49,087 nucleotides of DNA from Octopus bimaculoides (GCF_001194135.2 NC_068986.1:2644744-2693830), one strand, 5' to 3'. Shown: positions 301 through 44,200, counted from the stretch's first letter. Made by a program: numbers and translations. Notes: generated by a model not told the origin, from the sequence alone.

Positions 301-662
301 GATATATGTATATATATATAGATGTGTGTGTGTCTGTCTGTCTGTATGCATGTATATTTATGTGTGTGTGTATGTGATAGTTGTAAATGACTACCACAGT
401 CATACAAGCAATGGTATTCACTTCCAATATTCTATGAGCACATGTGTGGCTATGAGGAAATATTGCCTTGCTTCGAAACAGTTGAGAGTTGGTGACAAGA
501 AGAGCATCTTATTATGCAGAATCTTCCTCAATAAACTCTGTCCAACCTATGCAAGCTTAAAAAAGTAGATGTTAAACAGACGATGAGGACATGTCTATCT
601 GTATTATTTCAATGTTGGCATTCAGTTAATTTTTACTTAATTCATTTCTATTTATGTTGCAG

Positions 663-3600
663 GAAAACACATCCCGAGAAACATCCTGGCATTGTTCTAA
701 CTACCGAGGAATGTGTGTGTCAAGTATGTGGAGATACAGCTTCTACCATCCATTATGGAGTACTCACTTGCCCAGACTGTGTGCTTTTCTATCGACTGAG
801 CATACAAGACAGCTTTGCTGATGGGTACCACTGCAAGCATAAAGGGCATGAAATTACAAAGAGAAACCGAGGAAAGTGTGAGTACTGTTGGTACCAGAAA
901 TGTTGCAGAGCTGGAATGACGAGTGATAAACCAGAAATTGGTGAAACTGTTACTGTGATAAAAGTAGAGAACAAACAACAGCAAATGAAAAGTGAAAAAG
1001 CAGCCAACTCATTATTGAAGATGCCATCACTACATAAACACATAAATAAAGAGACACGCAAGGCCCCAACCCCACAACAAACTACAGAGTCTCAGAAAGT
1101 TCCACCACCGAAAAAAGATCTCAACTTATGTAAAGTCTGTGGAGATCGTGCTTTCAAGAAACATTATGGCATTTTGGCCTGTCCAGAATGTGAAGTTTTC
1201 TTTAAAATGAGTATTCTTGACGATTTTTACAAGGGCTATTTTTGCAAGTTTAAAAAATGCAAGATTAATCGTTTTCGGCGAAGTAGCTGTGAGTATTGTT
1301 GGTATGAGAAATGTCTGCTTAGTGGTATGCAGAAAGAGAAAGATGGTAGTCAACTGGAAGATGATGACAGCTGCAGGGTTGTTTCATCAACACAAAAAAT
1401 GGTAAAACCCGTTTGTGGCATTAAAGTAAAAGATGAGCAAAAAGAAAGCGAAGGATCTGTAACAGCAAACAATAACAAAAAGTGTATGAAGGTCATCAGT
1501 AGCAACAAGAACAACAACAACAATATTAGTAGCAAACTTCTAAGCAATAGCAACAACAATATTGGTAGTAAATCTCTAAACAATAGCAACAACAGTAGCA
1601 GCAGTAGATGTGTCTCTTCAACAGCGTCGAAAAGTCCTGTGAAAAAAAGGAAACTTGAAAGTATGGATCCAAACCTAGCCAAACCTTCTGAACATCAGAG
1701 CGACATTAACAGCATCCCTCACAAACGCTTCAAAGGGGTTAGTCATTCAGCAAGTAGCACACAGAATACTGGTAACTCTTCAAATACACAACTTCACTCA
1801 TCTTCAAAAAGGTGTACCAGTAATACTTCTGTCTCATCATCAACTGCTTCATTCCAGTCTCTTTCTGTTTCATTTTCTTGTTCGTCATCATCATCACAGT
1901 CATCATCATTAACCTCACCATCATTGTCATCATCATCATCTGTTTTATCCTCCTCCTCATCACCATCATCAATTCTATCATCATCATCATCATCGACTTT
2001 ATCATCATTGCCATCATCATCATCATCATCGTCGTCGTCATCATCAACCTTTGTATCACAGAAACCGACCAATGCTGTGACATTGCCATCAGTTTTAAAG
2101 AGGACTGCAGCATCAACAACAGTCACATTTTCAGCCCCCACTACTATGACAGCAAAAGTTCAGCAGAAAACAGTGGCAAAGAAAATCGTGGTGCTACCGA
2201 AAAAGAAAGTCACAGACAGTAACAAAGATGGTATCAAGATTGCTTCTGGTGCTGAATCACATCACAAAACGTGTAAATTACCAATTCACGAAAGAGTTGT
2301 AGCACCGAAGGAAGAATTTGTGAGAAATACCAATGTCAGTATTCCCAGCAGAAATGATAACAGTAGCGTTAGTAGTAGTAGTAGTAGTAATACTGGTTTA
2401 AACAGTAACAGCAGCAGACTGAAGAAATCTACTATTTCAACAGCTGTCGGCTCCTGCAATAAAGCGCCTGATGTAAATGCAGTGAATAGTAGCAAATTGA
2501 CTGATTCCGGTGCCACATCTGACAAATGTAAGCATGAAGACTTGTTGAAATCTACTGAGAGTGGTACGTGTAGAACTACTACTACTACTAACAACAACAC
2601 CACCAAGACTTTCATTGATCCTTCTCATTTTACACAAAATCTGAACATTTGCGCTGTGTGTGGTGATCAGGCTTCTGTTGTTAATTACGGAGTGCTTACT
2701 TGTCCAGATTGCCGCATCTTTTTCCAGATGTGCATACAAGATGGTTTTGCTGCTGGTTTCAGCTGTTCAAAACGACGAAATTGCTCAGTTACAAAAACAA
2801 ACCGGGAAAACTGTGAATTTTGTTGGTACAAGAAATGCCTTGCGGTTGGAATGCAGGCTGACCAAATATCAAAAATGACACCGACTTGTGATCGTTTTAC
2901 TTTTGCCTTGACGCCAACCTGTGATCGTTTTACATTTTCCTTACCTCTAACACCAATATCATCTGCACAGTTAACAACTGCCATTAGTAATACCACGAGC
3001 ACAAATACAACATCTGTACACATGGTCAGCTCTTTGGATCAAGTTAAAAATCCTGGAAATACACTATATTCTTCAGTGATAACTCCACTCATTCAAAATG
3101 AAGAATTGTGCATTGTCTGTAGTGCACCTTTTGCTGAGATCTATTGTGGTGCTAAAGTTTGTACTGATTGTAAGGCCTTCTGCAAAGAAAATGTTGATTC
3201 AAAGATATGCTCTAAGTATGTCTGTGAGCAGACTCAAAGCTGTTCTATTATCAATAGTGATTTGCTGCCAAAAAATCGGTGCAGCTATTGTTGGTATGAG
3301 AAGTGTGTAGAATGTGGTTTGCTCAGTAAAGAAACAATTGTTTTGAGAAATTCGTCCAGTTTGGAGACCCAGGCATCAAAAAATCAAATCCCTGATCCTG
3401 TTTTGGATAATCTAGTTTTCAGAGAATCAGTGGACATATACAGCGCTGTTTTGGACAATATACTTCAAGATAAAACAAGTCCATCTCATGTGGACAGTGA
3501 AATTCTTGAACCATACTTTGGGGACAATACTTCAGACAACCAGATTTGTGAACTACCAAGTTTGATGGAAAGTATGTTTGAATCTCTAACTAAATCATCT

Positions 3601-6600
3601 GAAGAAATAGAATTGATCCAGAAGAAATTTGAACGTCTAAAAATGGAAAAAGAACGTGTTAGTGCTTTAAAGAAACAAAACCAGCAACAGCAGCAGTCTG
3701 TGATGTCACCTGATACAATGAAAGAGTGTCCGTCAAAAGCTACCAGGCGTGTACTCCTTAACAGTAACGATAATCAGACAAAGGAAAGTGGTTTGTTACT
3801 AAAAGACAGTCATCTTAAGCAGACCAATGAAACCAGTAATTTTCCACCCTCCTCTTTGACTTCCAAAAATACCAGAATTGATTCCAACTCCGAGCACTCA
3901 AATCAAAATCGGGATCCATCGCTTTTTAGTTTGGATTGGGAAACAAAGTCTAATGAAAAACGTAACAACCCTGTGAAAGACAGTTTTACTTCAATTGCAA
4001 TGAATGATCGTTTGATGGTAAAAGTAACTAACGAAGTTCCACAGAACATTTTTGACAGCTCAGATGATATGACACCAGTTTCTGAATCTCTGCCATTTGT
4101 GTCATCAGCAGCTGGAGAAAAACAGGTGAAGAAAGTGGTTTTCAAATCAATCGTAGATCGAAGTGAAGACCAGGATGTGTCAGAAAAAGTCTCTGATATG
4201 GACAGATGTAATTTTGAGCATGGGGAGCGGGAAACTGCTCAGCAAAAATTAAATGAGCTTCAAATGAAGAAAGATAATGTGGAAGAGAAGCTTCTAATGC
4301 TCCAGAGAAGCATTGAGAAAGAACGGAAAAAACTTCTTAGTCTTCAGAAAGAAAGGAAGCGAGGAGTCAAAATTTGTGATAAGTCTCTGGAATCTTCAAA
4401 TGCATTGTCTTTAGATGCCAAAATGCCACAACTAGAACCTGAACCACAGCTTATATTGGAATCTTCAAATATTGATTTTGTTAAACAGAAACAGTCTGAA
4501 ACAAATGATTTTGCTATGATTGAGGATGGTGGCTCAGTTGTAACTGCTACTCATTCTGAAGAAACAGATTCTGAGAAGTTATGTAGAGTCTGTGGAGATA
4601 GAGCTCCAGGAGTCCTCTATGGAGTGTGGACATGTCTGAAATGTAGTGTCTTCTTCCGCCAGAGTCTAGACAAGCAAATTTCCAGTCAGTATGTGTGCCG
4701 AGATGGCAACTGTTATGTTGACAAAATAAATAGAGGTGTTTGTAGATATTGCTGGTACCAAAAATGTTTGGCTGTTGGAATGTCAAAACAAGAGAAACGA
4801 ATCGTTCCAGTTCAACCACCAACACCTACTCCCAAAGCTGGTCAACAGGATCCAAACAGAAATGAAAAGTCCCATGACAATAGTGATCACCATCAGATTA
4901 ATGAAAATGAAATGGGAATTATGCAGAATGTATTCCCTAATGATAAAAGTCCTTTAAATAAAGACCTTTCTGAGGAAATGAGTGAAGAAATACATGAAGA
5001 GATTGGTAATGTGGAGGTTTGTGATGTTCCTGATTTCAAGTCAGTGTCCAAAAGTAATAAAAACTGTTCAAGAACATTTTTGGATTTGAAAATTTCGCAG
5101 CCATCTTCAGGTGAACCAACAACCACAACATCTTCTTTGGCCCCAGAATCTTCAAATACAGAATTTGTAGATAATAACAATCAAATTAGTGATTCTGGAT
5201 GCTCTGTTGATATGAGTGAGTCGTTTCCTTCTCAAAAACCTAGCTGTGATTCCAATAATTCATCGATGTCCACTGCCATGGATACTAGTTTATGTAACGA
5301 AGATGTTACTGTAACAACGGAGAGAAAAGATCAAAGTGACGGTTCTCTTCTGTATGTCAGCAACGTGGATAAAAGCACTGCTTTGAATTCAAATTCTGAA
5401 AGCATTCCTCTAGTTGCATCAAATGATATCACAACTGAAATTCCAGTTGCAAATGCAAAAACTTCTTTGCCAGAGTCTGACCAGGGTTTGGGATTACGAG
5501 AAGCACCAACGTTCCGGAGAATCTTACCTGAAAGCCTTAGTACATCAGTGGATCCCTCCGTAGTTACTGAAGTCATTCCTGAACCTTTATGGAATTCTGT
5601 AGACACTGAGATTGTTCAAAAGAAGTCTGGGGATTCTGTTGATGATGGTGAAAGCAGTGCTGATAGAGTGACACCCGTAGAAATTATTGATTCAACTGGA
5701 GCAATACAGTCTGAGGAAAATGTGGATCATACTATTCTTGAGACATTGCGAAATTTTACCGATAAATCTGTTATTACAGAAATTATTCCAAGTTCTTCAA
5801 GAAATTCTGTAAATTCTTCAGTTTTGGTTGATATGATCCAAAACTCCAACTGTTGTTCACCTGAGGCTCCTGTTGGCAAAGAAATCATTCCTGGAGCACT
5901 GTCTCATTTCATTGATAAACAGTCTCTTAATCCTATAGCAGTGCCAGACCCTTCAGAGACCAGTTCTGAATTTGCTGGAAATTCTGATAATGAAGATTCT
6001 GTTTCAGATAGTAACCATCCTAAAGAAACTGGAACTGACTACTCCAGGATGACAACCAACCCAAATATTTCTTACAGGTCACGAGCTCCAACAGAGAAAG
6101 CATCTTTCACTTTGCTGAAAAGAACAGCTCATATGTCAAGGCAGAAGACAAGCAGAGCTGTTGGTGTACCATCTCTGTCTTTACGTTATATGATTAAATG
6201 TTGTTCTCCAAAACATATTGCAAATCAAATGCACAGTCGAATCAAAAAGTCAGTTCAAATGATTGGAAAGGCTAAGAAAAAATCTTCACTTTCAAAAAAT
6301 GCACTTCCTAGCTCATCGCATCAAGCTGCACTGAAAGAATATGAGTTTGTTGATGATAATCTTAATGATGATAATGATGATAATGATGATAATGATGACG
6401 GTCATTTGCAACATTCTTTGCCTAAATCACAGAAAACATACAGTACTGTGAAATTGTCTAAAAAAATGGCCAAGCAAAAAGTAAATTCAAAGACTTCCTT
6501 GAAAAAGAATTTGACATCACCTTCTATGCAGAAACAAAATCGTCATCCCCAAAACAATACTTCAAAGTCTATTTCTACTGTTGCCAAATCTACTTTCAAA

Positions 6601-9455
6601 ATCCCCCTAAGAAATAAAGATGTAGATTTGGAAACAACGCCAGCCAAGCCACTGCGTAAACGAGGCCGTCCACGAAAGATAAAATCAACACTACTCAGCA
6701 CTGAAGTAGCACCAACCTGCAAACAAGATTCTCTCTGTAAAGAAAACAGTAAACAGCCATCTTCTGTGTCAGAGAACGCCACTGGAATTTCGTCTGTCCC
6801 TTCTGTTGCTATAGTTGCAGAATTCAGTGAGAGAAATAAAGTCCGAAATAGAGAAGATAGTAGCATGGCTGAAAGCAGAGTTGGAAACAAAACTGATACT
6901 ATTTTCATTGGGACTAGCTTGTGTAGTGTTTGTGGAGATGTGTCTCATGGATTTCATTACGGTATTATTTCATGTTCAAGCTGCCGTAGTTTCTTTGCAC
7001 AGAGCACTGATTCCAAAATTGGCTGTAAATATGAAGTATGCAATAAATCATGCATAATCAACAGTGTAACACGCCGATTCTGTCGATATTGTTGGCTACA
7101 GAAGTGTCTACAGGCAGGAATGATGAAAGGCACCACTAAACGAGGACGGCCACCAAAACTTAGACCCCAAACTAACGAAGCTGAAACTGTTAGCAAACAG
7201 AAGGATTTGACTAGTGAAAAGGAAGTTTCTATTCCTGAGGCTCAGATTGGGACAAATTCAGAAACAGCACTTCGTAAAGAATCAATTCAAAATAATGAAA
7301 GCACTGTGGACAATAGTGATCCAGTCATTACTGACAATGACACCAACGCCGAAGACGATCAAGTTGATGGTATTGGTATATCATCTGATGTTATTAAAGA
7401 AGGGAACAACGGTGATGAGGAAGTAAATCTGAAAGCAAAGCCTTCCAGTTCAACACAAACTGGAATATCAGTTGATGAAGACTCTAATGAAATGAACTTA
7501 GAACAAGTCTCTAATAGATCTTCAGTTTCTCAAGAGAAGATGCTATGTGAGACGAGTTCAGAGAAGATAGTCAGTGAGCAATCCTCTATTGTTTGCATTG
7601 ATTTGGATAGTAATTTAAACAGCACTGGCACAGCTAATCTCACTGAAACCGAACCAATGGCTGTTGATAATGATTCTGATTCACCTTTAATTATTGAAAG
7701 TGTTCCACACCAGAGTGACAACAACAAAAGCGATGTCGGTAATTCCCAGAATCCAAACTCCACCAGCAGTCAAGAATGTTTCTGTAAGGTATGCGGTGAC
7801 TTGGCATCAGGAATACACTTTGGCATAGAAACCTGCTGGTCATGTACTATTTTCTTTAAGCAGAGTACTGACTCACGAACAACCAAAAAATATAAGTGCC
7901 ATAACAAAAACTGTTGTGTCACACCTGATAACTACGAACGTTGTTCTTATTGTTGGTTCCAAAAGTGCTTGCTTGTTGGCATGTCAAAAATGCTAATTCC
8001 TACAAATCAAAGCCAAAATGGAACTGGTCAATTCTTGGAGAGCTATACTTCAAATACTGACCAACCCATCTCTTCAGGAATCCACCAGGTAAAGAGTGGT
8101 AAGCTGTTACCTACAATTGCAGATTCTTCAAATACTGAAAGAAGTAAAGTAGGAGGCACGTCCCTTGCATCTGTAGCAACTTCCATCAGTAGCACAAACA
8201 GCATAGTTTCTGGTGCAACTTGTACAGCTACAGATGTTGTTGCTTGCAGTGTTCCTCCTGTTGAAAGAGAAATCAGCACAGTTAGTACATTTAATCCTAG
8301 AAGTCAAACTGTATCAGTAATTACCACAACACCATTACAGACCAACGCAAACACTAATACTACCAGCACACCTAATACAGTTTCTTTGCAGCCACAGTTA
8401 TCAAATAATAAACAACCTACAAACACTGTAGATGCTGTTCAAAGTAGACTTCACACTTCACCTGTAAAATCTGTGTTAGTTGCTCCTAAGCCTGCCACCT
8501 TACAACCAGCACAGACACCAACTCATTCTGATCTGATATGCAGTGTTTGTGATGATACTGCAATTGGTGTCCGGTATGGAGTACAGACATGTCGTAATTG
8601 TTTGTGTTTCTTTCGAACTATACTAAATGGGAGAATACCTACTGAAAAGGATCATGCAGATGGCAACTGTTTTATTAATAAAGCTACTACCAACCGGTGT
8701 CGATTCTGCTGGTACCAAAAATGTCTTTCTGTTGGGATGAGTGATACTCTACAAATGAAAAAGCAGCAAACATTAATGGCTACAAACAGACTCTCAGCAC
8801 CTGAACAGGATTGCAATGCCAACAGTTCCAATGTTTGTGACAAAACTAATCCTATATCAACTCCTAGTAATAATTCAGAGATTATTAACAAGCTTTCAGG
8901 ATTATCTATGACCACATCTTCAGAAGTACAAATGCTGCCTGTTACATCAAGCAAATCGGGTTCCACTTGTCCTACAGTATCTCAGTCCAAAGACCTAAGT
9001 TCCAACATGAGGAACACGACAAATGAATCGCCATCCGTGACTACTAATCTAAGCAAAGATGTTGCTAAGTTATGTAAAGTTTGTGGAGATGTCTCGTTTG
9101 TTTCTCATTATGGCATTGCATCTTGTTTGAACTGCAGTGTCTTTTTCCGACGCAGTTTGGACAAAAGACTACATCGTGCATATAAATGCCTCAACAAGGA
9201 CTGTTTAATCAGTCGTACCAGTCGTAGTCGCTGTTATTACTGCTGGTTCCAGAAGTGCGTGGGTGTTGGTATGTCCTACAAGGTTAAGCGTAAATTACGT
9301 CATCAGAAAGAAAAGTCAAGTGATCAAGCAGAAGTTCCACAGTCCCTGTTATCAACTCCTAATCAAGATGCTGTTAGTCAAAATTCTAAGAACAGCAGCA
9401 GTGGAAACAATACCCAACCAATTTCAAGTCAGAATAAAAGTCTAGTGTCTGATGG
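663..9455 (+). CDS. Giant exon (8793 bp, phase 2-2) of the multi-DBD gene, containing DBD1-DBD9
   Basis: Acceptor tttatgttgcag|G at 662/663 and donor GG|gtaagt at 9455/9456. Stop-free for about 2930 codons. DBDs at 718-918, 1129-1329, 2650-2853, 3109-3321, 4582-4782, 6922-7122, 7783-7983, 8539-8739 and 9073-9273. Confidence 0.92.
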
Positions 9456-10063
9456 GTAAGTAATAGTTTTCTAACATCTTAAATATTTTCATACCTGTTT
9501 GGGATGACTCTTGTCTTTTGGTCAAAACTTATAATTTCTAAGGCATTCAGACTGGGAGTATAAGGCTTCTCATTGAATGGGATGCCAGACTAAGTCTAGA
9601 GTAGCTTGAATGGGAAGCGATGCTCCACCCACCATATTCGTTGGATATTGCCCCACCAGATTATCATTTATTCCGCAGTCTTCAAAATCATTTGGACGCA
9701 AAACATGAATTCTGTAGACGAGGTTAGAAGAGGTGTGGTGTTATAAAAAGAATGAAGGGAGGCAACTCTAGTTTATTGAGGTCTAAATTATAAAAAATAC
9801 ATAATATATTCAAAAATTTAGGTCCATTATATCATCAATCAATCAACTTATCAATTAGCCAACTAAATAACCAATTAATCAATCAATCAATTTATTGGTT
9901 TTGTAATGGAGTTGCATATCACTGTCTACATCCCTATATATACACATGCACATACAACACAAATATATATATATATATAAGAACCGAAACATGTTAAATA
10001 TCTCTGAGAAAATTATAAATTAAAATTCATTTTTTATATATTGGCGTTTTCAAACTTCTTTTT

Positions 10064-10101
<38 letters not shown>

Positions 10102-10648
10102 NNNNNNNNNNNNNNNNNNNNNNNNNNNNNNNNNNNNNNNNNNNNNNNNNNNNNNNNNNNNNNNNNNNNNNNNNNNNNNNNNNNNNNNNNNNNNNNNNNN
10201 NNNNNNNNNNNNNNNNNNNNNNNNNNNNNNNNNNNNNNNNNNNNNNNNNNNNNNNNNNNNNNNNNNNNNNNNNNNNNNNNNNNNNNNNNNNNNNNNNNNN
10301 NNNNNNNNNNNNNNNNNNNNNNNNNNNGGAGAATATCGTTTATATTGTGTATCACTCACTAAAAAGATGAAATTTAAAATATGTTATCTCTCTCTCTCTC
10401 TCTCTCTTTGCACCGTCGCTAGAAGGGGACTTAACTCATGTTTGCAAATGCTGGTGTATTTCTCCGACTTGAAAATTGTTAGAAGTTATGGTTTAAAATT
10501 ATTTTTAATGCAAAAATTCACCTCTTAGGAAGCAAAAAAAAAAAAATTAATAAATGGCTGATTCCGGGCATTTTCAAACATGAGGAATCCATTCGTGCGA
10601 CTCCCAGATTGCTATCTTGTAAGGTGTGGATTTCTATAGATGCAACAA

Positions 10649-10681
<33 letters not shown>

Positions 10682-13600
10682 CACACAAACTCAGCTTTAC
10701 AATATGTACTGATTACTCAGTGGGAGTGGGTAATTGTGAGGGCTTGAGGAAATTATAGGAATTAGATGGATAAAAAATTCCGTAAAAAAATATTCTTTGA
10801 TTTTTTTTCAAATTTGATTTAAATGAACAATTATATTTAATATTATACAAAATCTAGTTTTGTTGCTGTAATTATTTCTAATCATTATGCTGCTACTACT
10901 TTCACCAGCAATCATGTAGAGTATACTAGTACTTTGAGTGGACTCTGAATAGTTCATATTATGGTAATTAGGATAGTTCTGGTTAGATCCCCTGTTGTGA
11001 ATAGGAAAATAATCTGAATAATCGTAATATTGGGGAAGAATATTTAATTGGAGATCCACAGATAGTTGCTAATCATCTAAATAATTTAATTATAGTAGCA
11101 GCTGTGGAGTATGCTCATGTATCTACATCTATACCAATTGTAAATATTACTGTAATTTGAAAATGTTGGTGTATTTACAACTGGCGTAAAATGATAAGGC
11201 ACCTTTATAGCATCAGATTTCTGTATATTCTTTTTCTACATGTTATATATTGTAGTTGAGTAATAGAAATCATTAATACTTATACCTGTGTATTTTGATT
11301 GAAGAACTTTATGTAATAGACCTAACAACAGCTATGAAGCAATAAGTCCAGTTGAAGTGATAGTTGTGTTATGTAGATTTAAAAACAAATTAAATATAAG
11401 CAACTGAATATCAATTGCTGTAAAAGAGAGAGAGAGAGAGAGAGAAAATAAATGGTACAAACAGCTTAAATATATGCTGGAAGTTAGGGGTAGTTAGATA
11501 CAGTCTAAAATAACAAAATGGAGAAAATGATGAAAACTAATTATAAAAAACAGATAACTATACAGCTGTGAGCCAACATGAAGATGTTAATAAAAATGCA
11601 ATGCTTTTAATTATAATGCTTAATTTTGATTGTTGTTGAAAAAATTTTTATATTACTGTGTTAATATACTTGAATATTTTTTTATATATTTTTAGTGACC
11701 TGGACAACCTGTCTCTTGGATTCACTCGGCATAGTGGCAACATACTCTGTAAAGTGTGTGGTGATGAGGCCTCTACTGTACATGCAGGTGTACTCACATG
11801 TTTTCCTTGTCGATCTTTCTTTAAACGAAGTCTAAAGAACAGTATCAACCGGAAATATTCTTGTGATAACAAAAACTGTTCAATTACCAAGAACAACAAA
11901 AAGAGCTGTGATTATTGCCGGTATCGAAAATGTCTTGCTCTTGGAATGGCCAAAAATACTGTAAAGCATAATGTGCAGCCTTTAAAAGATAAGACTGATA
12001 GCCAAAAGATGGTTGAGTCTGCTAGCAATGTACAGATTGAATCCATTACGAGGGTAATGTATATTTTCTTTTTATTTGCGTATATTTGGACATAAAGGTA
12101 CATGGTCCAGTTGTTAGAATGTTAGGCTCGTGGTCTTTAGGGTGTGGGTTTGGTTCTTGGATTGGGCTGTGCACCGTATCCTTGAGCAAGGGTCTTCATT
12201 TCATATTGCTCCAGAGCACTCAACTGAGCATGAGTACCAGTGGCACCTGAGAATTAACCCTGCGACTGACAGATGTCCAGTTCAGAGGGGTGCAATCTTA
12301 TACACTCAGTCTAAACACCTTGGAAATCTAGATAAGCTTTATCTTCAAGAGCCGCTAAGCCTGAGGCAGATTATCTATTGTAGCCATTATATATTTGTGC
12401 TGTGTATTGGAATTAGAGGTAAAAAATTCAACCTTTTCATTGCAATTTCTGTTATTCATATAATTCAGTTTATAACATTTCCAGGTAGGAACACCTGAGA
12501 TTGTTCATTGTAACATTAGTAAGAATTGTATTAAGTGCTATAACTACACCCTTGCCTGGGTACTTTGGTGATATTGAATGGAACTAAGTTTCAGTTGTAA
12601 GTAACCACTTAATAAACTAAGAAATTGTAATTTTTTTAACAATATTATATTTTTGGCATTGCTCACTTTTTACAGAACCATTGCAAAGTCTGTGGATATG
12701 AAGCATCTGGAATTCATTATGGTGTTTTGACCTGTCACAATTGCCGAGTTTTCTTCTACAAGAGCTGTGAGCAACAAAGTTTTAAAAACTATCAATGTGC
12801 CCTGAAAAATTGTAATGTATACGGTAGTGCGCAAGTGAATTGTTCCTATTGTCGCTACCAAAAGTGTTTGAGGGTTGGCATGTCAAAGGAATTGAGCAAA
12901 CGAGGAAGACGGCGCAAACTAGATGAGAATTTGTCTAAAGAAATGCCAGAGATGAAGAAGCAGCGAACAAAGGCTAATAGCACCAATAAATCTAAAACCA
13001 AGTAAGTTTTTTGTTTGTCCATTCCATTGATCATTCAAAATTTCTATGCCACTTTTATCATCATCCCAATTGCTTTAACATCCACTTGGCTTGCAAGAGC
13101 CCTGTGCCAGTGCTTCACAAAAACCACTTGTGCTGGCGTCACGTAAAAGTACTCATACCAGTGCCACATTAAAAGCATCCAGCACACACTGTAAGGTGAT
13201 TGGCGTTTGAAAAGACATCTAGCCATAGAAACCAAGCTAAATCAGACTGGAACCAAATGCAGCCCTCTTGTTTGCCAGCTCTGGCTGAATGGCTCAGACA
13301 GTGGAAAAAATAGGCATTAAAGCAGTGTTTCCCAAACTTTTTGCATCAAATTGCAATATCGCCCACTTATTGGCCAAAAATTGCTCCATTGCCCACCTGT
13401 GTAAAAAAAACCTCTGATACGACCATACCCCTAACACTAAATCCCCTAGGAGACCCCCCCCTGTATCATTTGACACACACTATAATGGCAGACGAAGTAC
13501 CACTAAGTATTTCACCCAGCGTGCAAACGTTTCTGCCAGATCACCGCCTTGTTAATATATATAGATATGTATGTATGTGTGTGTGTGTGTGTGTGTGTGT

Positions 13601-14577
13601 TTGTGTGTGTGTATGTATGTATATATATTTATATAGGAGAATTTGTTGTTGAAAATGCACTGAATTTGAAAAACATATAGTTGTTTTTAAATAGATTTAT
13701 TCACATACATACCAAATGTGAACATTTGATCATTTAAACATGCTTGTTTGATTTCTACTTTCTAATTTTAAACTGTGTTAAAATCCCATTGTTTTATATA
13801 CATTTCTACCATTGATGGACAAAAAAATTGTTGACACTAGTTTGGTATGTATGTGAATGAGTCTCTTCAAAAATAACTACATGTTTTTCAAATTCAGGTG
13901 CATGTTTAAAAACAAATTCTCCTTCTTTCCATATATTTATATATATATATGTATGTATACATACATACACACAGTGGACTTCTTTCAGTTTCTGTCTACC
14001 AAATTCACTCAAGGCTTTGGTCTGCCCATGCTATAGTAGAAGGCACTTACCCAAAGTGTGTGTGTGCATACGAATTGTATAAGTTATTTCTCATTTAACT
14101 TACACCACTGGGCTTAAAAGAACAGAGATGGAGAAAAACATATTTAATATCTTTCACATTAATGTTATGTTCTGTTTATACAATTTTATCCTTTCTTTGT
14201 TATAGCAACTCAGATGAAAACCCACAGAATATGGTGAAGGAAAATCCAAAAGTTCCTTGCATTGTTTGTTCGGATGTGTCCAGTGAGATTTATTGTGGGC
14301 TATGGGTTTGCCGAAGCTGCTGCACTTTCTTCCAGTTCAGTATTACTAACAACCGCAGCGAGAGTTACAAGTGCAAGTACAACAACCACTGCATTGTGAA
14401 CAAAACCAGCCGAGTATTGTGTCATCACTGCCGTTTCAAGAAATGTCTGATTGTTGGAATGATTAAAGAAGAGAAGTAAGCTGCTTTAATGTCTTTAAAC
14501 TATGCAATTCTGCAGAAAATATCTATAGAGTTTAGCATCTCTCTCTCTCTCTCTCTTTTCTCTCTCTCTCTCTCTCT

Positions 14578-14617
<40 letters not shown>

Positions 14618-14672
14618 CTNNNNNNNNNNTCTCTTTCTCTCTCTCTCCCTCTCTCTTTTTCTCTCTCTCTCT

Positions 14673-14703
<31 letters not shown>

Positions 14704-15905
14704 CCTCTCTCGCTTTCTCTATCTCTCTCTGGCTGGGTAACCATGCACCTCCTCTACAGCAAGACATTTGTTTCTTTCTCTCTGTCACTTTCTGACCTTT
14801 CATCATCTGATACAAGATCACTTCCTCCAATGCCCCACTCCCCTCTCAAAGATTCCTTGTCTTGCAAGTCACTTGGTAACCCTGCCAGTGCTGGTGCGAC
14901 TTAAAAAGCATCCAGTTCACGCTGTTAGTCACATTGGTGCTACCATCTTCATTTTTGCTACTCTTATGATCAAATTGCCGCAAACATACTTTATGGCTCT
15001 ACTTACTGTATGTACCCTTGTTTTTAAGATAGGTACACCATGTTCTGAGTGTTGGCAACATGAAGACAACGTCAGAAAGACTGTCTAACCCATGCTAGCA
15101 TGGGAAAACTGACATAAAATTGTGTGGGTATATTTACACACACATGTATGTGTGTGTGTATGTGGATGTTCCTGAATGTTGATATTTCAATTTTTATTGT
15201 TTGAATGAAACAGTGTTGATGTCTTGTTGACATTGTGACTGATGGCTCGACACTTTCAAATATCTGTGAAATATAAAAATCCCATTCTCCTGAAAAACAG
15301 GCGAGGGTTTGTGACAGGAAGAGCATCCAGTTATTAAATCCTGCTCCCAAATCCATTTCTGTCAAAGTCATAGCATGGAAAAAAAAAACATATTATAACA
15401 AATAAACTATATATATGATTATGTGTATCAACAATTTTATTATTTTCTTCTTTTTTTCTTTTAGCACTACAAATAACTATGAAAAAAAGAAGCTTTTGTG
15501 TAACCCACGTCACTTTCCGTGTAAAGTTTGTGGAGATCTTGCATCTGGTATACATTATGGCCATTTCATTTGTGAAGGCTGTAAAGGATTTTTCCGTCGT
15601 AGCATACGCAAGAAAATGGTTTATTTGTGCATAAGCAAAAACTGCATAATCAATAAGTTCACAAGGACTCGTTGTGCCTACTGTAGGCTACAAAAATGTT
15701 TGACTCTTGGCATGTCCAAAGAAGCCAGTCGAAAGGGCCGGCGAACAAAGGAAAACCAAATGAAACTAATGAGCCAACCCCGTGAAGAATGCAAAATGTA
15801 TGAGGAGTACACAAACCTAAACTCTGCACCTAGACCATGGCCCAGTAACGCAATACCACAGAGGGAACCAGTGGAGTATATTGAAGATGCTGATCAACCT
15901 AAAAT
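663..15905 (+). CDS. Multi-DBD nuclear-receptor-like protein (13 C4 zinc-finger DBDs, no LBD seen). Visible CDS is join(663..9455,11696..12053,12676..13001,14206..14475,15465..15905), 10188 nt, 3396 aa; 5' exon(s) outside the window
   Basis: All junctions are GT-AG and frame-compatible (phases 2/2/0/2/2). Thirteen copies of C-x2-C-x13-C-x2-C...C-x2-C-x4-C-x3-G[ML], with the usual [DY]x5[YF]G and FF motifs largely retained. Confidence 0.88.
6655..6678 (+). other. AT-hook motif RKRGRPRK
   Basis: Matches the R-G-R-P AT-hook core with basic flanks. A second copy, KRGRPPK, is at 7138-7158 directly after DBD6. Confidence 0.7.
11696..12053 (+). CDS. Multi-DBD gene exon with DBD10 (11748-11948; P-box CFPCRS)
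   Basis: tttttag|T acceptor (phase 2) and AGG|gtaatg donor (phase 0). [21 protein letters not shown]...[14 protein letters not shown]. Confidence 0.9.
12125..12370 (+). mobile_element. Degenerate tRNA-derived SINE in an intron of the multi-DBD gene
   Basis: Shares the TCCTTGAGCAAG...CTTCATTTCA...TGCTCCAG core with copies at 19725, 26789 and 31927. Confidence 0.6.
12676..13001 (+). CDS. Multi-DBD gene exon with DBD11 (12682-12882; P-box CHNCRV)
   Basis: ttttacag|AAC acceptor (phase 0) and AA|gtaagt donor (phase 2). [21 protein letters not shown]...[26 protein letters not shown]. Confidence 0.9.
14206..14475 (+). CDS. Multi-DBD gene exon with DBD12 (14258-14461; P-box CRSCCT)
   Basis: ttgttatag|C acceptor and AA|gtaagc donor; 270 bp, phase 2-2. 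Confidence 0.88.
15465..15905 (+). CDS. Multi-DBD gene exon with the canonical DBD13 (15520-15714; P-box CEGCKG)
   Basis: cttttag|C acceptor (phase 2). [37 protein letters not shown]...[24 protein letters not shown]. Ends either at donor AT|gtaagt (15905) or at TAA 15907-15909. Confidence 0.9.
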
Positions 15906-18929: not shown

Positions 18930-19500
18930 TGATGATCTAGAAGCTAAACACTATGGAGAGCATCCAGCAAACAGCTAATTCCATCCACCAGAGTATTAAA
19001 GTAACAATAACCTGCCCTGACAAGCACCCGGACTATAGATTACCTGTTCTAGACATGGCACTCTGGCTAGAAACGAAGAACGGTGAGGTCCAGTGCCTTC
19101 ACTCCCATTATGCCAAACCCATGGCCTCTAAGAACCCTGTTCACAAGAACACAGCTATTGCGGACAACTCCAAGTTCCACATTCTTATAGCTGACTTGGT
19201 GAGAGTGATGAGGAATGCGTCTCGCATGTGTGACCTTATGGAATTGGAAAGACACATACAACACTTCATCCGCCCGCATGCAGTTCTCTGGCTACAATCA
19301 AAGGAGCAGGATTAGAGTGTGCACAGGAGCCAGGACTAAGTACAAAGTCAACATAGAAAGTGTTGCTAAGGAGATCTGCCTGCTGTACAGGAGTCAATCC
19401 TGGAACAGCACAGAAAGGAGCAGAAATAAGATAGAAAAGAAGTTCAGCGGGGAATATTCATCTAGAGTTGTGCTCTTTGAAAAAAAATCAGTATCTTTAC
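18930..19500 (+). pseudogene. Degenerate Penelope-like retroelement RT C-terminal fragment
   Basis: ITCPDKHPDYRLPVLDMALWLE...HSHYAKPMAS...K..IL..DL.R..RN.S resembles the thumb region of Penelope-like RTs as I recall it; frameshift near 19270. Confidence 0.6.
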
Positions 19501-19724
19501 AGTATAAGGCATGGATCTCAAACAAAAACTCACATCACTCAGATCTCTAGACATCTCGGAAAACTACATGGGTGAAAAATTTCTTGGTGGGCCACAAAAG
19601 ACCCAAGAATTGGGACAGGCTGCTAACTCTCACAACTTGAGAGCATTGTATAACAATCGGAAAGGTGTGTTTGATCCCCAAAGGAGTGGTACTGGACCTA
19701 TTCTTTCTAACAGATGTTTTTATG

Positions 19725-30400: not shown

Positions 30401-33400
30401 TGTGGGGCTTTGCAGGAGTGAGAATTAGACACAAGTGATTATTAAGGGAGAGATGAGTAGAACAGGAATACTCGTATGTAGGTGGCATGAGCCCAGTCAG
30501 CTGTGAGGAGCAGAGGCCATAGCAGTAGAAAAAGAACACCATATTTGGTAATGTGACTGTAGAAAAAATGGAAAAAGACAGTATGGTCATGGATGGAATG
30601 TCTTTCATTGTGGACCTGCTAGATCATGGTTGTCCTGGAGCTAAACAATAACTCCTGTGGTGGGGAAAAGCATGACCAGCTACAATTAATTTGGTGCCAA
30701 ATTATGTGTTCCAAAGATTTTAGTCAGACATTTGGCAAACCAGCCATTCTTTGTCAAAATCAGTGCATTGCAATTGTGCATTCTTCTAAACTGATTGCTT
30801 GGGGTTGGTGGTACAAATTCTTTTTTATTTTTTTCTATCCCTCTCTCCCTATGTCTGTGTGTGAGATTCATTAATCTATCTCTCTGTTTCTTACATTTGC
30901 ATATTTTGTGCTTTGCGGAATTCTATTTTCCATTTCAATAAAAATGTTTTGCAACTTTAGGCAGAATAGCTTAATAGCTTAGCAAATAAAAGATTTATAT
31001 GAATTTGAGGAGTAGATTATTTTCTGTCCTACCAGTCACAGTGCTGTGTACCATCAGTTATAAACAACTGAGACAAATGGTGTAAAGCCTGAGGGTACAG
31101 TATTAGCAATTCATCATCATCATCATTTAACGTCCGTTTTCCATGCTGGCATGGGTTGGACGGTTTGACAGGAGCTGGCCAGCCACAGTGTTGTCCAGAG
31201 TCCATTTGTCTGTTTTGGCATGGTTTCTACAGTTGGATGCCCTTCCTAACACCAGCCACTTTACAGAGGGTGCAGGGTGCTTCATATGTGCCACTGGCAA
31301 GACAAAGACCTGTATGTATGGATGGCCATGATTTTACTTTGCTTGGTATGTCTCCTCAAGTACAGCAAATTGCCACAAATCCCGGTCCCTTGTCATTTCT
31401 TCAGTGAGGCCCAGCATCTGATGATCCTTTTTCACCACTTTGTCCCACGTCTTCCTAAGTAATTTAAATGGTTTATTAATAATTATACTTCTAATTTAAT
31501 AACTTATTTCTCTTATTGTCTCCAGAGATAACACTTCCACTGAACTTCATTTCATAGAACTGGAAAATAGGCACCTGGTTTCACCTGCAATAAACTAGCA
31601 TCATTGCTAAAAGTAATTTGATTTGCAGCAGGAATATCTTACACTTGTATATCTGCTACTTTTTCTTACTTGTAATTATGTAAATGTTTATTTATTTCTA
31701 CCTTCCTTCCTGTACAGAATTTACTTGGATTACAATGCTTCAACACCACATGCTCCCCAGGTAATTGATGTTATATCACACACTCTAAAGAAGAAATGGT
31801 TTAATCCAAGTAGTATCTACTTCTCAGACAATAAAGAAATCGGTAAGTTCTTTGAGTTTGTTCGTTGAGAAAATGAAATTTGTGTTTTTGAGTCATAAAA
31901 TCCATGCTTAGTATTGATGTAGTGTGAAAGCACATGACCTAGTGGTCAGTGTGTTGCACTTTAAGATTGTGAGATTGTGGTTTCAATTCTTAGATTGGGT
32001 GGTGGCATTATGTCCTTGAGCAAAAAATTTTATTTCATGTTGCTCTGTGATCACTTCAACATCTGACATGAGGCACATCATGCACCTGTACAGGCAATAT
32101 CGCTAAACTACTTTTTTATGGACTTCATCTATCTCTTGCTTCCTGGGTTAGAGGCTTCCTTTCATACCACACCATTGTGGTATGTGCTGACAGAATTCAC
32201 TCTGACCCACATTATATCAACTTCATTTTGCCCACATTTTCTCCTCCTGTTCATCAATAGCCTATTTGCCCTCACATCCAATAGCAGCATTGTGTTTGTG
32301 TGCCTATGTACCCCTGTAGTCATACAAAGTTACTCATGTACAAATGCTCGGCTTCCCTGTCTGAGGTTCTCTCTTGGTGTTCCTTTCAGCGTAACAGTGA
32401 CTACTACATCACAAAGACTGACCTTCTTCAGAGCCAAGAAACATTTGCCAACAATTACTAACCCTAACCCTAACCCTAACCCTTTACAAAGGCCAGGTGA
32501 GCCCCTCAATGTAATAGTGCTCCACACTTGGGGTAGTGCTGCTGCATCATATACAGACAGCCTAGATTAACCACATACCCCCCAAAAAGAAAAAAAAAAC
32601 TGTCTCCTGACCTACTGGCTTGAAGTTGTTCACCAACACACTCCTATCCTGGACTCTCAAACTTAGTTGATCTCAAGTAACTTTGGCCTGCCCAGTTCAT
32701 TTATCTTTCCTCTTTTCAGCAGCCATATTGTGTCCATCTTCCAAGTTATGCTCTACTTTCCCAGTCTTTGCTGCTCAAAATGTCAACCGTTAAGAATTTC
32801 TTCCTTGGCCATGTTTTCATTACAGCTATCATGAACATCAACCACATCAATCTCTCCAGTTTGGAGAATGTGTGAACAACACTGACACAGTTCCAAACCA
32901 TTGAAAATATAAAGAAAAAAAAAATCATTCTTTGATGCTAATTCAAAATTTGATTTGATACGGTTACTGAAATTTGAAGGAAAGTCCTGTACATATGCAA
33001 TATAATTATAAGAACATTTTTTTCTATCTCCTGTTTCTAGTTAACACTTCTCATGAGGTCATTGAAGATGCAAGAGAACAGGTTGCTGATATGATCGGTT
33101 CTTCTCCTAAAGGTAAGTGTCTCTGACATTTCAACAGTCTTCTGCCTCTGAAATTTTACTCAATTATGCAAAGAGTTGCTCAGTCTCTGGGTAGCTTTCC
33201 CACTCACTGAGGATTTCAGGATCTGGTGGATATAGTAATTTTTTGAACAGTAATACTTGTGTAATTAATTGGATCGTGTGAAGGAGCCCTCTGCCTTCAG
33301 GTAGACATTTCTGTAAACTTTCTTTTCTGATGCCACCCACTCAATCTTCCCATCCAGTCCACAATCTTAGATCAGTCACAGTCAATATAGATCCAATGAA

Positions 33401-35140
33401 TGGTAAGGCTTGGGAGAATGGAGATATGTAGATATGTGCTGTGTGCAAGAAGTAAGATGGAGTGGAGCCTCAGTCAGACCTCACACAGGCAAGGAACAAT
33501 GATATAAATTCTTCTCAGTAGGCAGTAGTGATGGTGTGGGAGATGTCAGATGAATTTTGACAGAGAATGTGTAGATCAAATGATTGAGATGGAGTGTGCA
33601 AATACAATTATTAAGCTTAGATTAGTCTTGGGAAACATAACATTTATCTCTGTTCCTTAATCGGAATTAACAAGTTAACCAAAAAACCACACCAACTCGG
33701 GAGATGAATGTTTAATAATAATGATATATATCATCAATGTCATATAAAGCGATGTAGTATCTTGGGTGGGTCATTATGCCAATAAAATGATGTACTCTTG
33801 CAGGGATCATCACATTCTTCCTTGCAGAAACATAGTTTGCTTATAACATCAACCTGATCATTGTATAAAGGCTAAATACCATTCTCATACCAATTTTAGT
33901 AAGTAAGAAAACCATTGAATTTCTTGATTCAGGTTCTGGTACAAAAGCTTACCCTATGAAAGAAACAGGTGACTTTTACCATTGCAAATGCGAGCTAAGA
34001 ACTAATATCTACTAGGGTCTCTTTCAAGCATAGCTGGCCATGGGTTTTCTGCATTTAGGGAAAGTGTCTCTTACAAAGTGCAGGCATAGGCGAGATGCAA
34101 GGCTGTTGTGGATGACAAGCAGTTGCCTGTCCATGCATGTCAGCCTTGTCCATGCCACCAGTAATGTTTAAAGGAAAGGCATGGTTGCTACAGCTTGGCG
34201 TCAGTGTCATCATAAGTTATTGCTGTCAGAGCACAAAGATCCAGAAAAGATGCTACAGGGCATCCTTTCTCTAACACCCTTAACAGTTCCACTAATCCAC
34301 TGCCCTGCTTCCCTATATTTTTATCAACCCTGAAAGGATGAAAGGCAAAGTTGGTCTCAGCAGGATTTGAACTTCAAGTGCAGAGAGTTGGAACAAATAC
34401 TGCTTGACATTTCATTTGATGCTCCAAGTGATTGCCAATTCACCATTTAAGGAACTAATATTACTTGGGCAAATGTCTTCTACTATCGCCCCAGGCTGAC
34501 CAATGCTTTGCAAATGAATTTGGAAGATGGAAACTGTGGAAGCCCCTCATACATATATGTATGTGTGTATGTTTGTGTTTGTCCTCTGCACTACTTGACA
34601 ATTGGTGTTGGTTTGTTTATGCCCTGCCTCCCATAAATTAGCGGTTCAGAATAAGTGCTAGATTTTAAAAGCAAAAAAAAAAAAAAAAAAAAAANNNNNN
34701 NNNNNNNNNNNNNNNNNNNNNNNNNNNNNNNNNNNNNNNNNNNNNNNNNNNNNNNNNNNNNNNNNNNNNNNNNNNNNNNNNNNNNNNNNNNNNNNNNNNN
34801 NNNNNNNNNNNNNNNNNNNNNNNNNNNNNNNNNNNNNNNNNNNNNNNNNNNNNNNNNNNNNNNNNNNNNNNNNNNNNNNNNNNNNNNNNNNNNNNNNNNN
34901 NNNNNNNNNNNNNNNNNNNNNNNNNNNNNNNNNNNNNNNNNNNNNNNNNNNNNNNNNNNNNNNNNNNNNNNNNNNNNNNNNNNNNNNNNNNNNNNNNNNN
35001 NNNNNNNNNNNNNNNNNNNNNNNNNNNNNNNNNNNNNNNNNNNNNNNNNNNNNNNNNNNNNNNNNNNNNNNNNNNNNNNNNNNNNNNNTGTTTTTAATCA
35101 CTGATTACACTCTTTTCCTACAATATTTTCAGTAATGATT

Positions 35141-35206
<66 letters not shown>

Positions 35207-41200: not shown

Positions 41201-44200
41201 CTTGCATTGATAAGGCTCTTGGGAAAAGCATGAACCTCACAGATCCCCATTGCTTTCCTCCAATACATTAGAAACCTGTGCCATTTTTATCCATCCATCC
41301 ATCCGTCTTCTCCACCCACTATTCTTAAGAGGGCTGTTGGGATAGAGCCCTTAGGGACCTACCAGAAGCAACTGTCATTAGACTTTCTGGTTGGACTCTC
41401 AAGCTCGACCAACTGAGACCATGGATATTATCCATCCATCTTGTTCTTGGTCTACTTGTAGATCTCCTGTTGGTTGGCTTAGCTTGAAGAATTTGTTTTG
41501 CAATTCTTTCCTGCAACATTCTAACCACATATCTTTAGTACCAGATCTATGATCTCCCAATGTTGCGTTGGATTTGGGTGGCAGGAATGCATAGTGTCGT
41601 CTCTCCTTTTCATAATTTTTATGAGCTGGGTTGACATGCATCCTATTGTGGATGTGATATCACAATCAGTGAGTATAGGATTGGTCAGCCAATTTTAAGA
41701 AATCTTAAATTTTTTTGTTTTTCATCCAGGAAGCTTTTGGTGCAGATAATGTAAAGTTTAATGGTCGAATACCTGGTGTTCCCAGACTGCCAAACACATG
41801 TAATGTTTCCATATTAGATGGACATTTGGAAGGTAAGTTTTCTTATGTGATTTGTTATATTTTAATCCTGGATTTGTTTTGACTTGTTTTTAAATTCTGG
41901 TAGCAGACGTAGTTAGAATGTTAAATTTATTAGTCAAATATAAATAATGTAAATAATGTACCATTATTATTATTAGTTAACAGCCATTTTCCATGTTGCA
42001 TGAGTTAGATGGATCAACAAGATCCAGTAAGCCACAGGACTACTTCGTATTCCAGGCATGTGATTAAACATTCTGAATGCTCCAAGTTGGTGGAACCTGT
42101 AGAAAAGAGTGACCAAAGAAGACATTGGTCAATGTGGTAGAGACTGATGTGAGGGGAGCGAACCTCACGAGGGACATGACCAGTGACTATGGCTTGTAGT
42201 GGAAGCAATGTTAGACTGGACATACTTAACCCATTCAGTCATAGAAAAACAAGTTTAAAGATGATGATGTTGGTCATGGTGGTGATGGAGATTGGCTTGT
42301 GTATTATTTACATTTGGGTCCATACCATTAATTCCTGCTAGTTTCCAGATGTTTAGATGTAGCAACCTTTACATAATTAACAGAAATAAAACCAAGATGG
42401 GAGTGCATCATCGTATGATTTCTTATTATAATAAGAGATACCAAAATTTATATTTTACTGCACTGTTCATCCATTGATTATTCGCATAACAATGTCACAT
42501 TATCAAAAAGATGTATAAATCACTATTCCTTCAGTTCTATATTTAAGAGATGAGGAATTATTTACATTATTTACATTATTTACATTTGACGGATATTTGT
42601 CCTCATCTTGTTTGTTGTCAACACAACGTTTCGGCTGATATACCCTCCAGCCTTCGTCAGGTGTCTTGGGGAAATTTCGAACCTGGGTTCTCATTCCTAA
42701 CGATGTTACTATTATTATATTATTATTATTATTACTATTATTAATCAGGTCGCTGCCATGAATCGAACTCGGAACCTTGGGGTTAGTAGCCCGCGCTCTT
42801 AACCACTACGCCATTCTAACTAATAGTAATAATAATAATAGTAACATCGTTAGGAATGAGAACCCAGGTTCGAAATTTCCCCGAGACACCTGACGAAGGC
42901 TGGAGGGTATATCAGCCGAAACGTTGTGTTGACAACAAACAAGACGAGGACAAATATCCGTCAAATGTAAATAATGTAAATAATGTCACTATTCCTTGTT
43001 GCTTTTTTATTTATATTTTTGTATATAAGAGCTGAAATTTATGTGAATAGGACCATTGTCTTTTGTAAGGATTAATATTATACATTTGTACTTGTAGATT
43101 TATACTTCTGTATTTATTTGTTTCCAGGTAGAAAAATATTGTCCCATGTAAAGTTAATTAAGGCCAGTGTTGGAGCTGCATGTCATTCGAGTGATAAAAA
43201 CAGGTGAGACTAATTATCAAAGTTTGTGGTTCAATACATGAAAGAACATATTTAATGCGGTTTGTAAAATGTTCAGGCTTATACTGTTTCATTGAATTCC
43301 TTGTGGCTAAGTAAGTCATGGAACTTGAGCTCAATCATTAAATGTTTAACTCTTTAGTATTTAAACTGATAATATCTGGACCCATGTATTTTTTTTTTTT
43401 CCTTCTTTGTTCAGACTGGCCAGATCCAGCCTCTTGCGTTTACCCTACATTGTCATTCTAAAAATTAACAATCATAACCTCGAAATCCTGATGCTACAAG
43501 ATAATACATGTTTAATTCAATGTGAATAAATAAGCATTACATTTCACAGGGTCATTAAAATGCTAATTGGTTAAGCAAGTTTCTTCATCGTTTACTTTAG
43601 TTCTGTCCTGGTAGAAATCATCCTTAGTGCCAAGGAAGTGGATTAGCTGTAAAACCTGTTCCTAGAACACAAGTTTATCTAACAATACTAACATAAAAAA
43701 ACAAATGTTAAAAACAGTATTAATAACTAGTTAGTGATTGAAGTTAACATGTACTGTTGACATCGTGGAAATAAGATTCAAAGCTTAGCAAGCACTGTTT
43801 AATATTTCAGGATAAGCAATATTTTGGCAGTTTCAGTTCTGTTGTTAGAATCAGGTACCCTTTCTGCTTCATAGTTGAGGGGATTAACAAAATATATCCA
43901 ACTCCAAAACCAGCTGTTCCAATTAACAAATTTTGCAAAACCAAAAGATTAGATTTTGAAAACTTTTCTTCGTTTTAACAGCATAATAAAAGAAGACAGT
44001 TACTAAAAATCAGTTTTATTTACAGAAGTATTTCACTCGTATGATACTGACAAATGTGGTTCAATATTTTTAAATGATATTGACAAATGTTGTTTGATAT
44101 TTGTCACATTGTAATTGTTCTGGGTGACACTGTGGGAAAATGATGCAACTTTTATTTGGAAAACTGATATCATGTTAACGCAGGCAGCTGGGTCAACAGG

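Follow-up and report, generated by a model that had tools for sequence, protein, structure and literature searches.

A very large coleoid gene with an array of mostly non-canonical nuclear receptor DNA-binding domains, joined in at least one species to selenocysteine lyase

What does a nuclear receptor (NR) gene become when it carries thirteen DNA-binding domains (DBDs), each with a P-box of its own? The question is raised by a stretch of 49,087 nucleotides from Octopus bimaculoides (GCF_001194135.2, NC_068986.1:2644744-2693830), called the window below, which comes from a draft assembly and has 37% GC and eight N-gaps. To our knowledge, NRs have been described with one DBD or with two (the 2DBD-NRs), and the P-box is among the most conserved features of the family. 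A sequence-only reading of the window had placed 13 distinct P-boxes on a conserved scaffold at 718-15714 and had proposed either diversifying selection on DNA recognition, as in a programmable array, or loss of base readout with reuse of the modules for binding protein or RNA. The modules are part of one very large coleoid gene, with 13 zf-C4 modules in the window and a degenerate module, DBD0, upstream of it.

A six-frame scan of the window with the pattern C-x2-C-x12-14-C-x2-C gave 13 matches, all on the plus strand, and their P-boxes were exactly the strings listed by the sequence-only reading (Table 1). Pfam zf-C4 (PF00105) matched 13/13 modules far above the cut-off, with a joint E of 6e-143 for DBD1-9 in the large frame and E values of 4e-23, 4e-19, 2e-17, and 8e-28 for DBD10-13, respectively. 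The modules have the two C4 zinc modules, the length of about 66 amino acids (aa), and the helix after Cys3 that define the zf-C4 DBD of the NR superfamily. The zf-C4 alignment of the 13 modules agreed with the earlier description of a conserved scaffold under mostly non-canonical P-boxes: Cys1-4, Cys7, Cys8, the Lys-Cys after finger 2, one Gly, and one Phe were invariant, and mean column identity was 50%. Among the replaced zinc ligands, the Cys6-to-His change of DBD1 was also present in its orthologues from the cuttlefish Acanthosepion pharaonis (Sepia below) and from contig L002, and in the two octopods alone Cys5 of DBD6 lies one residue away from its usual place. Recent tandem duplication was ruled out, because paralogous module pairs are only 28-49% identical.

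Table 1. Features of the array gene and of the selenocysteine lyase (SCLY) exons in the window. Each DBD row starts at the first cysteine codon of the module; a slash marks a splice junction.
Feature	Position	Strand	Remarks
Giant coding exon, 8793 nt, DBD1-9	663-9455	+	acceptor TTGCAG/G at 661-662; donor GG/GTAAGT at 9456
DBD1	718-918	+	P-box CPDCVL; Cys6 to His; Trp after Cys8
DBD2	1129-1329	+	P-box CPECEV; same in Sepia and L002
DBD3	2650-2853	+	P-box CPDCRI
DBD4	3109-3321	+	P-box CTDCKA; most degenerate module: net charge 0, 3-residue insert in finger 2, GM end lost
Other linker islands	3535-3640, 4290-4400, 5580-5960, 6180-6240	+	approximate, read off the translation
DBD5	4582-4782	+	P-box CLKCSV; same in Sepia and L002; CVKCSV in Argonauta
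AT-hook-like motif before DBD6	6655-6684	+	kept in Argonauta and L002
DBD6	6922-7122	+	P-box CSSCRS; conserved AT-hook / GRIP-box-like extension next to it
AT-hook / GRIP-box-like extension after DBD6	7123-7164	+	conserved
DBD7	7783-7983	+	P-box CWSCTI
DBD8	8539-8739	+	P-box CRNCLC; Cys5 to His in 4/4 species
DBD9	9073-9273	+	P-box CLNCSV; FFRR kept; net charge +9
Intron, phase 2	9456-11695	+	contains gap 10102-10327; donor GTAAGT and acceptor TTTTTAG/ kept in position and phase in Argonauta
DBD10 exon	11696-12053	+	Pfam, splice sites, Argonauta junctions
DBD10	11748-11948	+	P-box CFPCRS; Arg after Cys8; net charge +10
DBD11 exon	12676-13001	+	Pfam, splice sites, Argonauta junctions
DBD11	12682-12882	+	P-box CHNCRV
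DBD12 exon	14206-14475	+	Pfam, splice sites, Argonauta junctions
DBD12	14258-14461	+	P-box CRSCCT
Intron, phase 2	14476-15464	+	contains 10-N gap 14620-14629 in a (CT)n microsatellite
DBD13 exon	15465-15905	+	donor AT/GTAAGT at 15906
DBD13	15520-15714	+	canonical P-box CEGCKG; net charge +11; conserved tail
SCLY (Aminotran_5) exons	31718-45234	+	tblastn of Argonauta model P0002; junctions; transcript L003; Pfam
SCLY further exons	near 33043, 35238, 36473, 37203, 37438, 38687, 40241, 41724, 43127, 45067	+	as for the preceding row

A stop-free frame of 2974 codons (535-9456, frame 0) contains DBD1-9, and the open stretches of DBD10-13 have pyrimidine-rich AG acceptors and GTAAG or GTAAT donors at their ends. 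A single combination of consensus sites leads from exon 663-9455 to exon 15465-15905, and it is GT-AG and phase-compatible throughout. Exon order, junctions, and phases are identical in the gap-free locus of Argonauta hians (L001), and no extra DBD exon was found in the Argonauta introns that match the two gap-bearing Octopus introns. Given the exon model and the same junctions in Argonauta, the gaps at 10102-10327 and 14620-14629 fall in introns. From 664 on, the RefSeq protein XP_014778860.1 (P0009; uncharacterized protein LOC106875287, O. bimaculoides) is identical to the window, which fixes the start of the giant exon at 663. Its residues 1-346 correspond to an exon upstream of the window with DBD0, which has a long insertion in finger 1; A. 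pharaonis CAE1274829.1 (P0126) shares this N-terminus and DBD0. The RefSeq sequence departs from the giant frame at about 1740 (between ...KGV and YQ), so the gene is truncated in this old model.

Orthologues were recovered by an exhaustive profile search with the 13 modules, which matched cephalopod pieces and many 2DBD-NRs. In the Argonauta locus, DBD4-9 share a frame of more than 3288 codons, and the DBD10-13 exons come after it. L002 (ENA ERZ21867824) contains DBD1, DBD2, an extra module DBD2b, DBD3, and DBD4-9, the A. pharaonis locus (L005) has ten DBDs (1, 2, 2b, and 3-9) in one frame of 3223 codons, and a Logan contig (L003) holds a partial DBD11, DBD12, and DBD13 of a further species. 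In a neighbor-joining (NJ) tree each module grouped with its positional counterparts of other species (bootstrap 73-100); DBD1-3 formed a clade (bootstrap 97), and the deep nodes were without support. By this grouping every module is 1:1 orthologous from octopus to cuttlefish and the modules are old paralogues. Since they group by position across species, all duplications are older than the octopod-decapodiform split; the divergence of octopus and cuttlefish is commonly dated to a few hundred million years ago.

DBD2b was the only copy-number difference. It lies between DBD2 and DBD3 in the decapodiform-like loci (L005:23371 and L002:11156), has the P-box CEVCNE / CNACYN, and ends in ...KW.QVG, not in KC..GM, and no relic of it was found in the DBD2-DBD3 interval of Octopus (1330-2649). 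Between DBD3 and DBD4 of L002 the giant exon falls into two frames that overlap (L002:11736-11845), which is probably an assembly indel; the Sepia frame is continuous there.

The residues by which NR DBDs contact DNA were compared with those of 275 control DBDs from non-cephalopod library matches. The near-invariant Arg after Cys8 was present in 4/13 array modules versus 269/275 controls (98%), and in DBD1-9 (9/13) it was replaced by a Trp that is kept in the orthologues. Lys after Cys4 was retained in 2/13 modules versus 204/275 controls (74%), Arg of FFxR in 3/13 versus 228/275 (83%), and Glu at P-box position 1 in 1/13 versus 167/275, a count for E only. Four P-boxes (EGCKG, EACKK, EGCKK, and LPCKS) account for 156 of the 275 controls. 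The full canonical set of four contact residues, which the array as a whole lacks, was found in DBD13 only, together with a basic C-terminal extension; FF[RK]R was retained in DBD9 and DBD10. Net charge ranged from +11 in DBD13, +10 in DBD10, and +9 in DBD9 to +3 in DBD1 and DBD3 and 0 in DBD4, with control averages of +5 to +9. It varied between orthologues of DBD4, DBD7, and DBD8, and was zero or negative in DBD4 and in DBD8 of Argonauta.

The sequences of array modules matched the RAR, ROR, and Rev-Erb DBDs in the Protein Data Bank, and the nearest solved relatives of DBD13 were the DBDs of RAR-alpha and ROR-gamma. DBD1, with Pro at P-box position 1 and the Cys6-to-His change, was the sole module modeled with AlphaFold2 (AF2), giving a predicted local distance difference test (pLDDT) score of 88.8; the top Foldseek matches of the model were NR DBD crystal structures (template modeling [TM] score, 0.8-0.86; rmsd, about 0.9 A). 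The modules thus look folded and selected, and most of them lack the canonical residues that read a half-site.

The P-boxes differ strongly within the array and change at ordinary rates between species. Among the 13 Octopus paralogues, the four variable P-box columns had pairwise identities of 0.06-0.12 (mean, 0.10), as low as the most variable loop columns, versus a mean of 0.20 for the 39 other variable columns, a difference that was not significant (Mann-Whitney P = 0.12). Among orthologues, P-box column identity was 0.55-0.62 (mean, 0.60) versus 0.57 for other variable columns (P = 0.7), and in octopod-decapodiform pairs it was 0.57 versus 0.51. The dN/dS analysis was limited to Octopus and Argonauta, being unusable beyond this pair (pS, 0.8-0.9). 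The Nei-Gojobori dN was 0.28 for the P-box and 0.22 for other non-invariant codons, and dN/dS was about 0.18 and about 0.15, respectively, both rough values at a saturated dS of about 1.5. CPECEV, CLNCSV, and CEGCKG were identical in all sampled species, CLKCSV likewise except in Argonauta, and the P-box of DBD1 was CPDC[VM]L across species.

The sequence-only reading had staked its diversifying version on P-box positions varying more than other surface positions, and they did not. Its observation of 13 distinct atypical P-boxes on a kept scaffold stands; ongoing diversifying selection, and with it the programmable array, is not supported. Judged from the alignments, each module keeps its own P-box under purifying selection about as strong as that on the rest of the domain surface. 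Because the P-boxes are kept across species and evolve at ordinary rates, their diversity is ancient and maintained, with no arms-race-like sign.

The linkers evolve very differently from the modules. The DBDs were 70, 65, and 57% identical between species pairs with zero gaps, whereas the linkers were 50, 33, and 29% identical at aligned positions, with thousands of gap columns. The modules are about 67 aa long and the linkers between them 70 to 700 aa, the latter disordered apart from conserved islands, which are two coiled-coil-like stretches, a 14-letter motif, and three motifs containing E[VI]IP (such as ...VITEIIPSS... and ...GKEIIPGAL...). Two AT-hook-like KRGRP[RP]K motifs also lie in linkers, one of them directly after DBD6. 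A long Ser/Asn/Thr-rich low-complexity tract was noted between DBD2 and DBD3 (1435-2500).

No NR ligand-binding domain (LBD) was detected. Pfam found only zf-C4 in the 2974-aa frame and in the other long open stretches, and a hidden Markov model (HMM) of our own, made from 70 2DBD-NR LBD tails, gave no match with an E below 0.7 in six-frame pieces of the window, L001, and L002. In the position of the C-terminal LBD of NRs (PF00104), the transcript in L003 passes from DBD13 straight into SCLY. The SCLY exon set in the window is complete, interrupted by gaps at 34695-35088, 39388-39545, and 44974-44983. The exons were 56-82% identical in the SCLY alignment and include TIVGHK and GAACHS, which hold the pyridoxal phosphate (PLP) lysine motif GHK and the catalytic cysteine motif ACHS. 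They are orthologous to animal SCLY (47-62% identical), the top named matches being annotated as SCLY, and PF00266 matched the fused transcript product (P0156) with an E of 4.5e-51. By sequence, the fold of selenocysteine lyase and class-V aminotransferases is present with both its PLP lysine and its catalytic cysteine.

In at least one species, splicing joins SCLY in frame to the last DBD exon. The strongest of three independent lines for this join is L003 (SRR27666080_82463; 2578 bp), which reads DBD11-DBD12-DBD13-...ELPE/IVYLDYNATTP... to a stop codon and 3' untranslated region; it can only be a spliced mRNA, since it is one frame without introns. In Octopus the open stretch of the first conserved SCLY exon lacks an ATG. 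In both octopods this exon starts at a conserved acceptor and has exactly the phase of the DBD13 donor, the junction codon being AT/A (Ile) in Octopus and AA/G (Lys) in Argonauta. Gene models in other genera have the same composition: Argonauta GAB1611135.1 holds DBD10-13 and Aminotran_5, and an A. pharaonis record describes a 2152-aa product that starts inside the giant exon and has zf-C4 and Aminotran_5. A stand-alone SCLY mRNA is also made, at least in a cuttlefish-like species, the transcript of which (L004) opens with a separate first exon, MGGITSKYWYEDNDRD/IVYLDYN..., and has an ATG of its own and a stop upstream.

Other features were seen in and around the intron between DBD13 and SCLY. 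In Argonauta this intron contains a LINE with endonuclease and reverse-transcriptase domains (L001:26994-30473, plus strand), and in Octopus it contains open stretches of 112-124 aa without a Pfam match (18941-19547, plus strand), which may be transposon remains. The one conserved block of this intron, at 31115-31254, was discounted as the alternative SCLY first exon, since it has several Argonauta matches and resembles a repeat. Downstream of SCLY in Argonauta lies a gene with a B9-C2 domain (L001:60901-61322, minus strand).

With moderate confidence, we regard the product as a giant protein derived from an NR and devoid of an LBD, in which DBD13 is the canonical anchor, DBD1-8 are surfaces that do not read half-sites, and SCLY forms the end. 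DBD13, with all canonical reading residues, a basic extension, and a charge of +11, would probably anchor the protein on AGGTCA-type half-sites, and further affinity for DNA, either general or through the minor groove, probably comes from DBD9, DBD10, and the conserved AT-hooks. The Trp-type DBD1-8, in which the canonical contacts are mostly lost and some modules are without positive charge, most likely no longer read the classic half-site; each is probably a fixed binding surface of its own kind, with non-canonical DNA, RNA, or a protein as its partner. With their coiled-coil-like and short linear motifs, the linkers would turn the protein as a whole into a chromatin scaffold, and SCLY may substitute for the LBD as the end that dimerises or binds a small molecule. 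Loss of base readout, the second proposal of the sequence-only reading, fits the residue pattern of most modules; DBD13 is an exception, and DBD9 and DBD10 probably are too.

Several points weigh against this account. The deep conservation of single atypical P-boxes could equally mean specific reading of non-canonical DNA, AF2 tends to reproduce the family fold and its model is silent on zinc binding, and dS saturation makes the dN/dS values rough. The LBD search used our own HMM on open stretches of at least 20 aa, and the 15.8-kb Octopus intron between DBD13 and SCLY has gaps. Without splicing, each phase-2 donor (xxG/TAAG..) reads as a TAA stop in frame; a protein that terminates after DBD13 may thus be made, perhaps as the main product. 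The spliced fusion transcript is from another cephalopod and covers only DBD11-13 and SCLY. The alternative SCLY first exon of the stand-alone mRNA (MGGITSKYWYED...) was not found in the DBD13-to-SCLY intron of Octopus or Argonauta by tblastn, blastn, or regular-expression searches.

The main rival, possible although we do not favor it, is a static composite DNA reader, in which all or most modules are sequence-specific with fixed new specificities and together recognize long composite elements, in the way of a poly-zinc-finger protein that lacks turnover. Module-specific P-boxes kept from octopus to cuttlefish (CPECEV, CLKCSV, CLNCSV, and CPDC[VM]L) would be expected of such a reader, as would indel-free domains under purifying selection, the net basic charge of most modules (+3 to +10), the AT-hooks, and the NR fold predicted for DBD1. 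For some modules it is harder to reconcile with the loss of most canonical contacts relative to the controls and with the zero or negative charge of DBD4 and of Argonauta DBD8 and the instability of charge between orthologues. Also against it, P-box columns are conserved no better than other surface columns.

The scaffold reading with an SCLY end also has to be weighed against two adjacent genes, an array ending at the TAA after the DBD13 exon and a separate SCLY, the fusion being a minor conjoined product or an artefact. We consider this rather unlikely. The in-frame TAA at the DBD13 donor is present in both Octopus and Argonauta, the stand-alone SCLY mRNA L004 exists, and SCLY is a separate protein of 405-500 aa in nearly all other animals among the matches listed. 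Against two genes, however, the first SCLY exon in Octopus lacks an ATG and has a conserved acceptor in the phase of the DBD13 donor, the GTAAG donor is kept beyond what a stop codon needs, and searches of the octopod introns revealed no stand-alone first exon. Moreover, the intron-less contig L003 joins DBD11-13 to a complete SCLY open reading frame, and two independent annotations in other genera fuse DBDs and SCLY. Compared with stand-alone animal SCLY (about 405-500 aa), the first conserved SCLY exon here is an internal exon downstream of a DBD array.

An array that is programmable and evolves fast under diversifying selection, perhaps to counter repeats or transposons in the manner of KRAB zinc-finger proteins (KRAB-ZFPs), is very improbable. 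Thirteen different P-boxes in one protein, in columns among the most variable between paralogues, first suggest it, and as in poly-C2H2 and KRAB-ZFP arrays the tandem zinc modules lie mostly in one big exon and differ in their recognition helices, a functional analogy. Neither turnover of modules between lineages nor a signal of positive selection at contact residues was seen: orthology is strictly 1:1 in four cephalopods with DBD2b as the sole difference, paralogues have diverged far, P-box identity between orthologues equals that of other variable positions, and dN/dS is low. The modules are also treble-clef C4 pairs with long linkers, unlike C2H2 and KRAB-ZFP arrays, the linkers of which have 7 aa. 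There is next to no chance that the array is decaying into pseudogenised DBDs or was misassembled across gaps, since the eight gaps of the draft, the replaced zinc ligands, and the degenerate DBD4 are outweighed by 2974 stop-free codons in DNA of 37% GC, three further assemblies (two free of Ns) with a matching open frame and order of modules, DBDs far better kept than linkers, and Cys-to-His changes that are themselves conserved.

Among known systems, the NR0A proteins (knirps/knrl/eagle) resemble the array in having an NR DBD without an LBD. NR0A proteins are small, have one canonical DBD, and act through it and short motifs in a disordered tail, whereas the array consists of mostly non-canonical DBDs with an enzyme domain. 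The 2DBD-NRs, the closest group described so far, resemble the array in having several zf-C4 DBDs in one polypeptide and in occurring in molluscs. They have been proposed as subfamily NR7, with P-P modules EACKK-EGCKG or LPCKS-EGCKK (Wu & LoVerde, PMC1810520, PMC10497141), and cephalopods are unmentioned in the 2023 survey (PMC10497141). The last DBD of the array, with CEGCKG and FFRR, equals the second DBD of 2DBD-NRAs in these features. The upstream P-boxes are unusual in both, and that of DBD10 (CFPCRS in Octopus and CLACQS in Argonauta) resembles the CLPCKS of the first DBD of molluscan 2DBD-NRBs. In contrast to the two DBDs and LBD of an NR7 member, the array has 13-14 DBDs, no LBD that was found, a C-terminal SCLY, and Trp for Arg after Cys8 in nine modules. 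BLAST identity of the modules to first and second 2DBD-NR DBDs was alike (45-54%), and the deep nodes of the NJ tree that would relate them are unsupported.

Proteins with 3-6 NR DBDs were present among the library matches, from Caenorhabditis brenneri, the mite Dinothrombium tinctorium, the stick insect Bacillus rossius, and ENA and Logan contigs. Their P-boxes are all different and non-canonical, and several have LBD-like C-termini; some could be fused gene models. In the literature searched, we came across no account of an NR carrying three or more DBDs, nor of a fusion between an NR and SCLY.

The gene breaks several rules of its family at once, with 13-14 DBDs (nine of them in one exon), P-boxes that are almost all non-canonical and are yet kept one by one across the octopus-cuttlefish divergence, no LBD found, and an in-frame splice to an enzyme. 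It provides a natural series of NR DBD variants that bears on what the fold binds once the canonical contacts are lost, and it places a giant cephalopod-specific zinc-finger regulator beside the known C2H2 expansions of that clade. It also raises the testable idea of an enzyme in the place of an LBD. At the far end of this idea, and with only a slender chance of being right, stands a new class of chromatin protein in which the dimeric PLP enzyme SCLY replaced the LBD behind 14 NR modules, coupling selenium or PLP status to gene regulation and forming a second, independently invented poly-finger recognition code on the NR fold; the enzyme end would then be a metabolite-sensing or dimerising regulatory domain. 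Given the library proteins with 3-6 DBDs, poly-DBD NRs may be an overlooked class.

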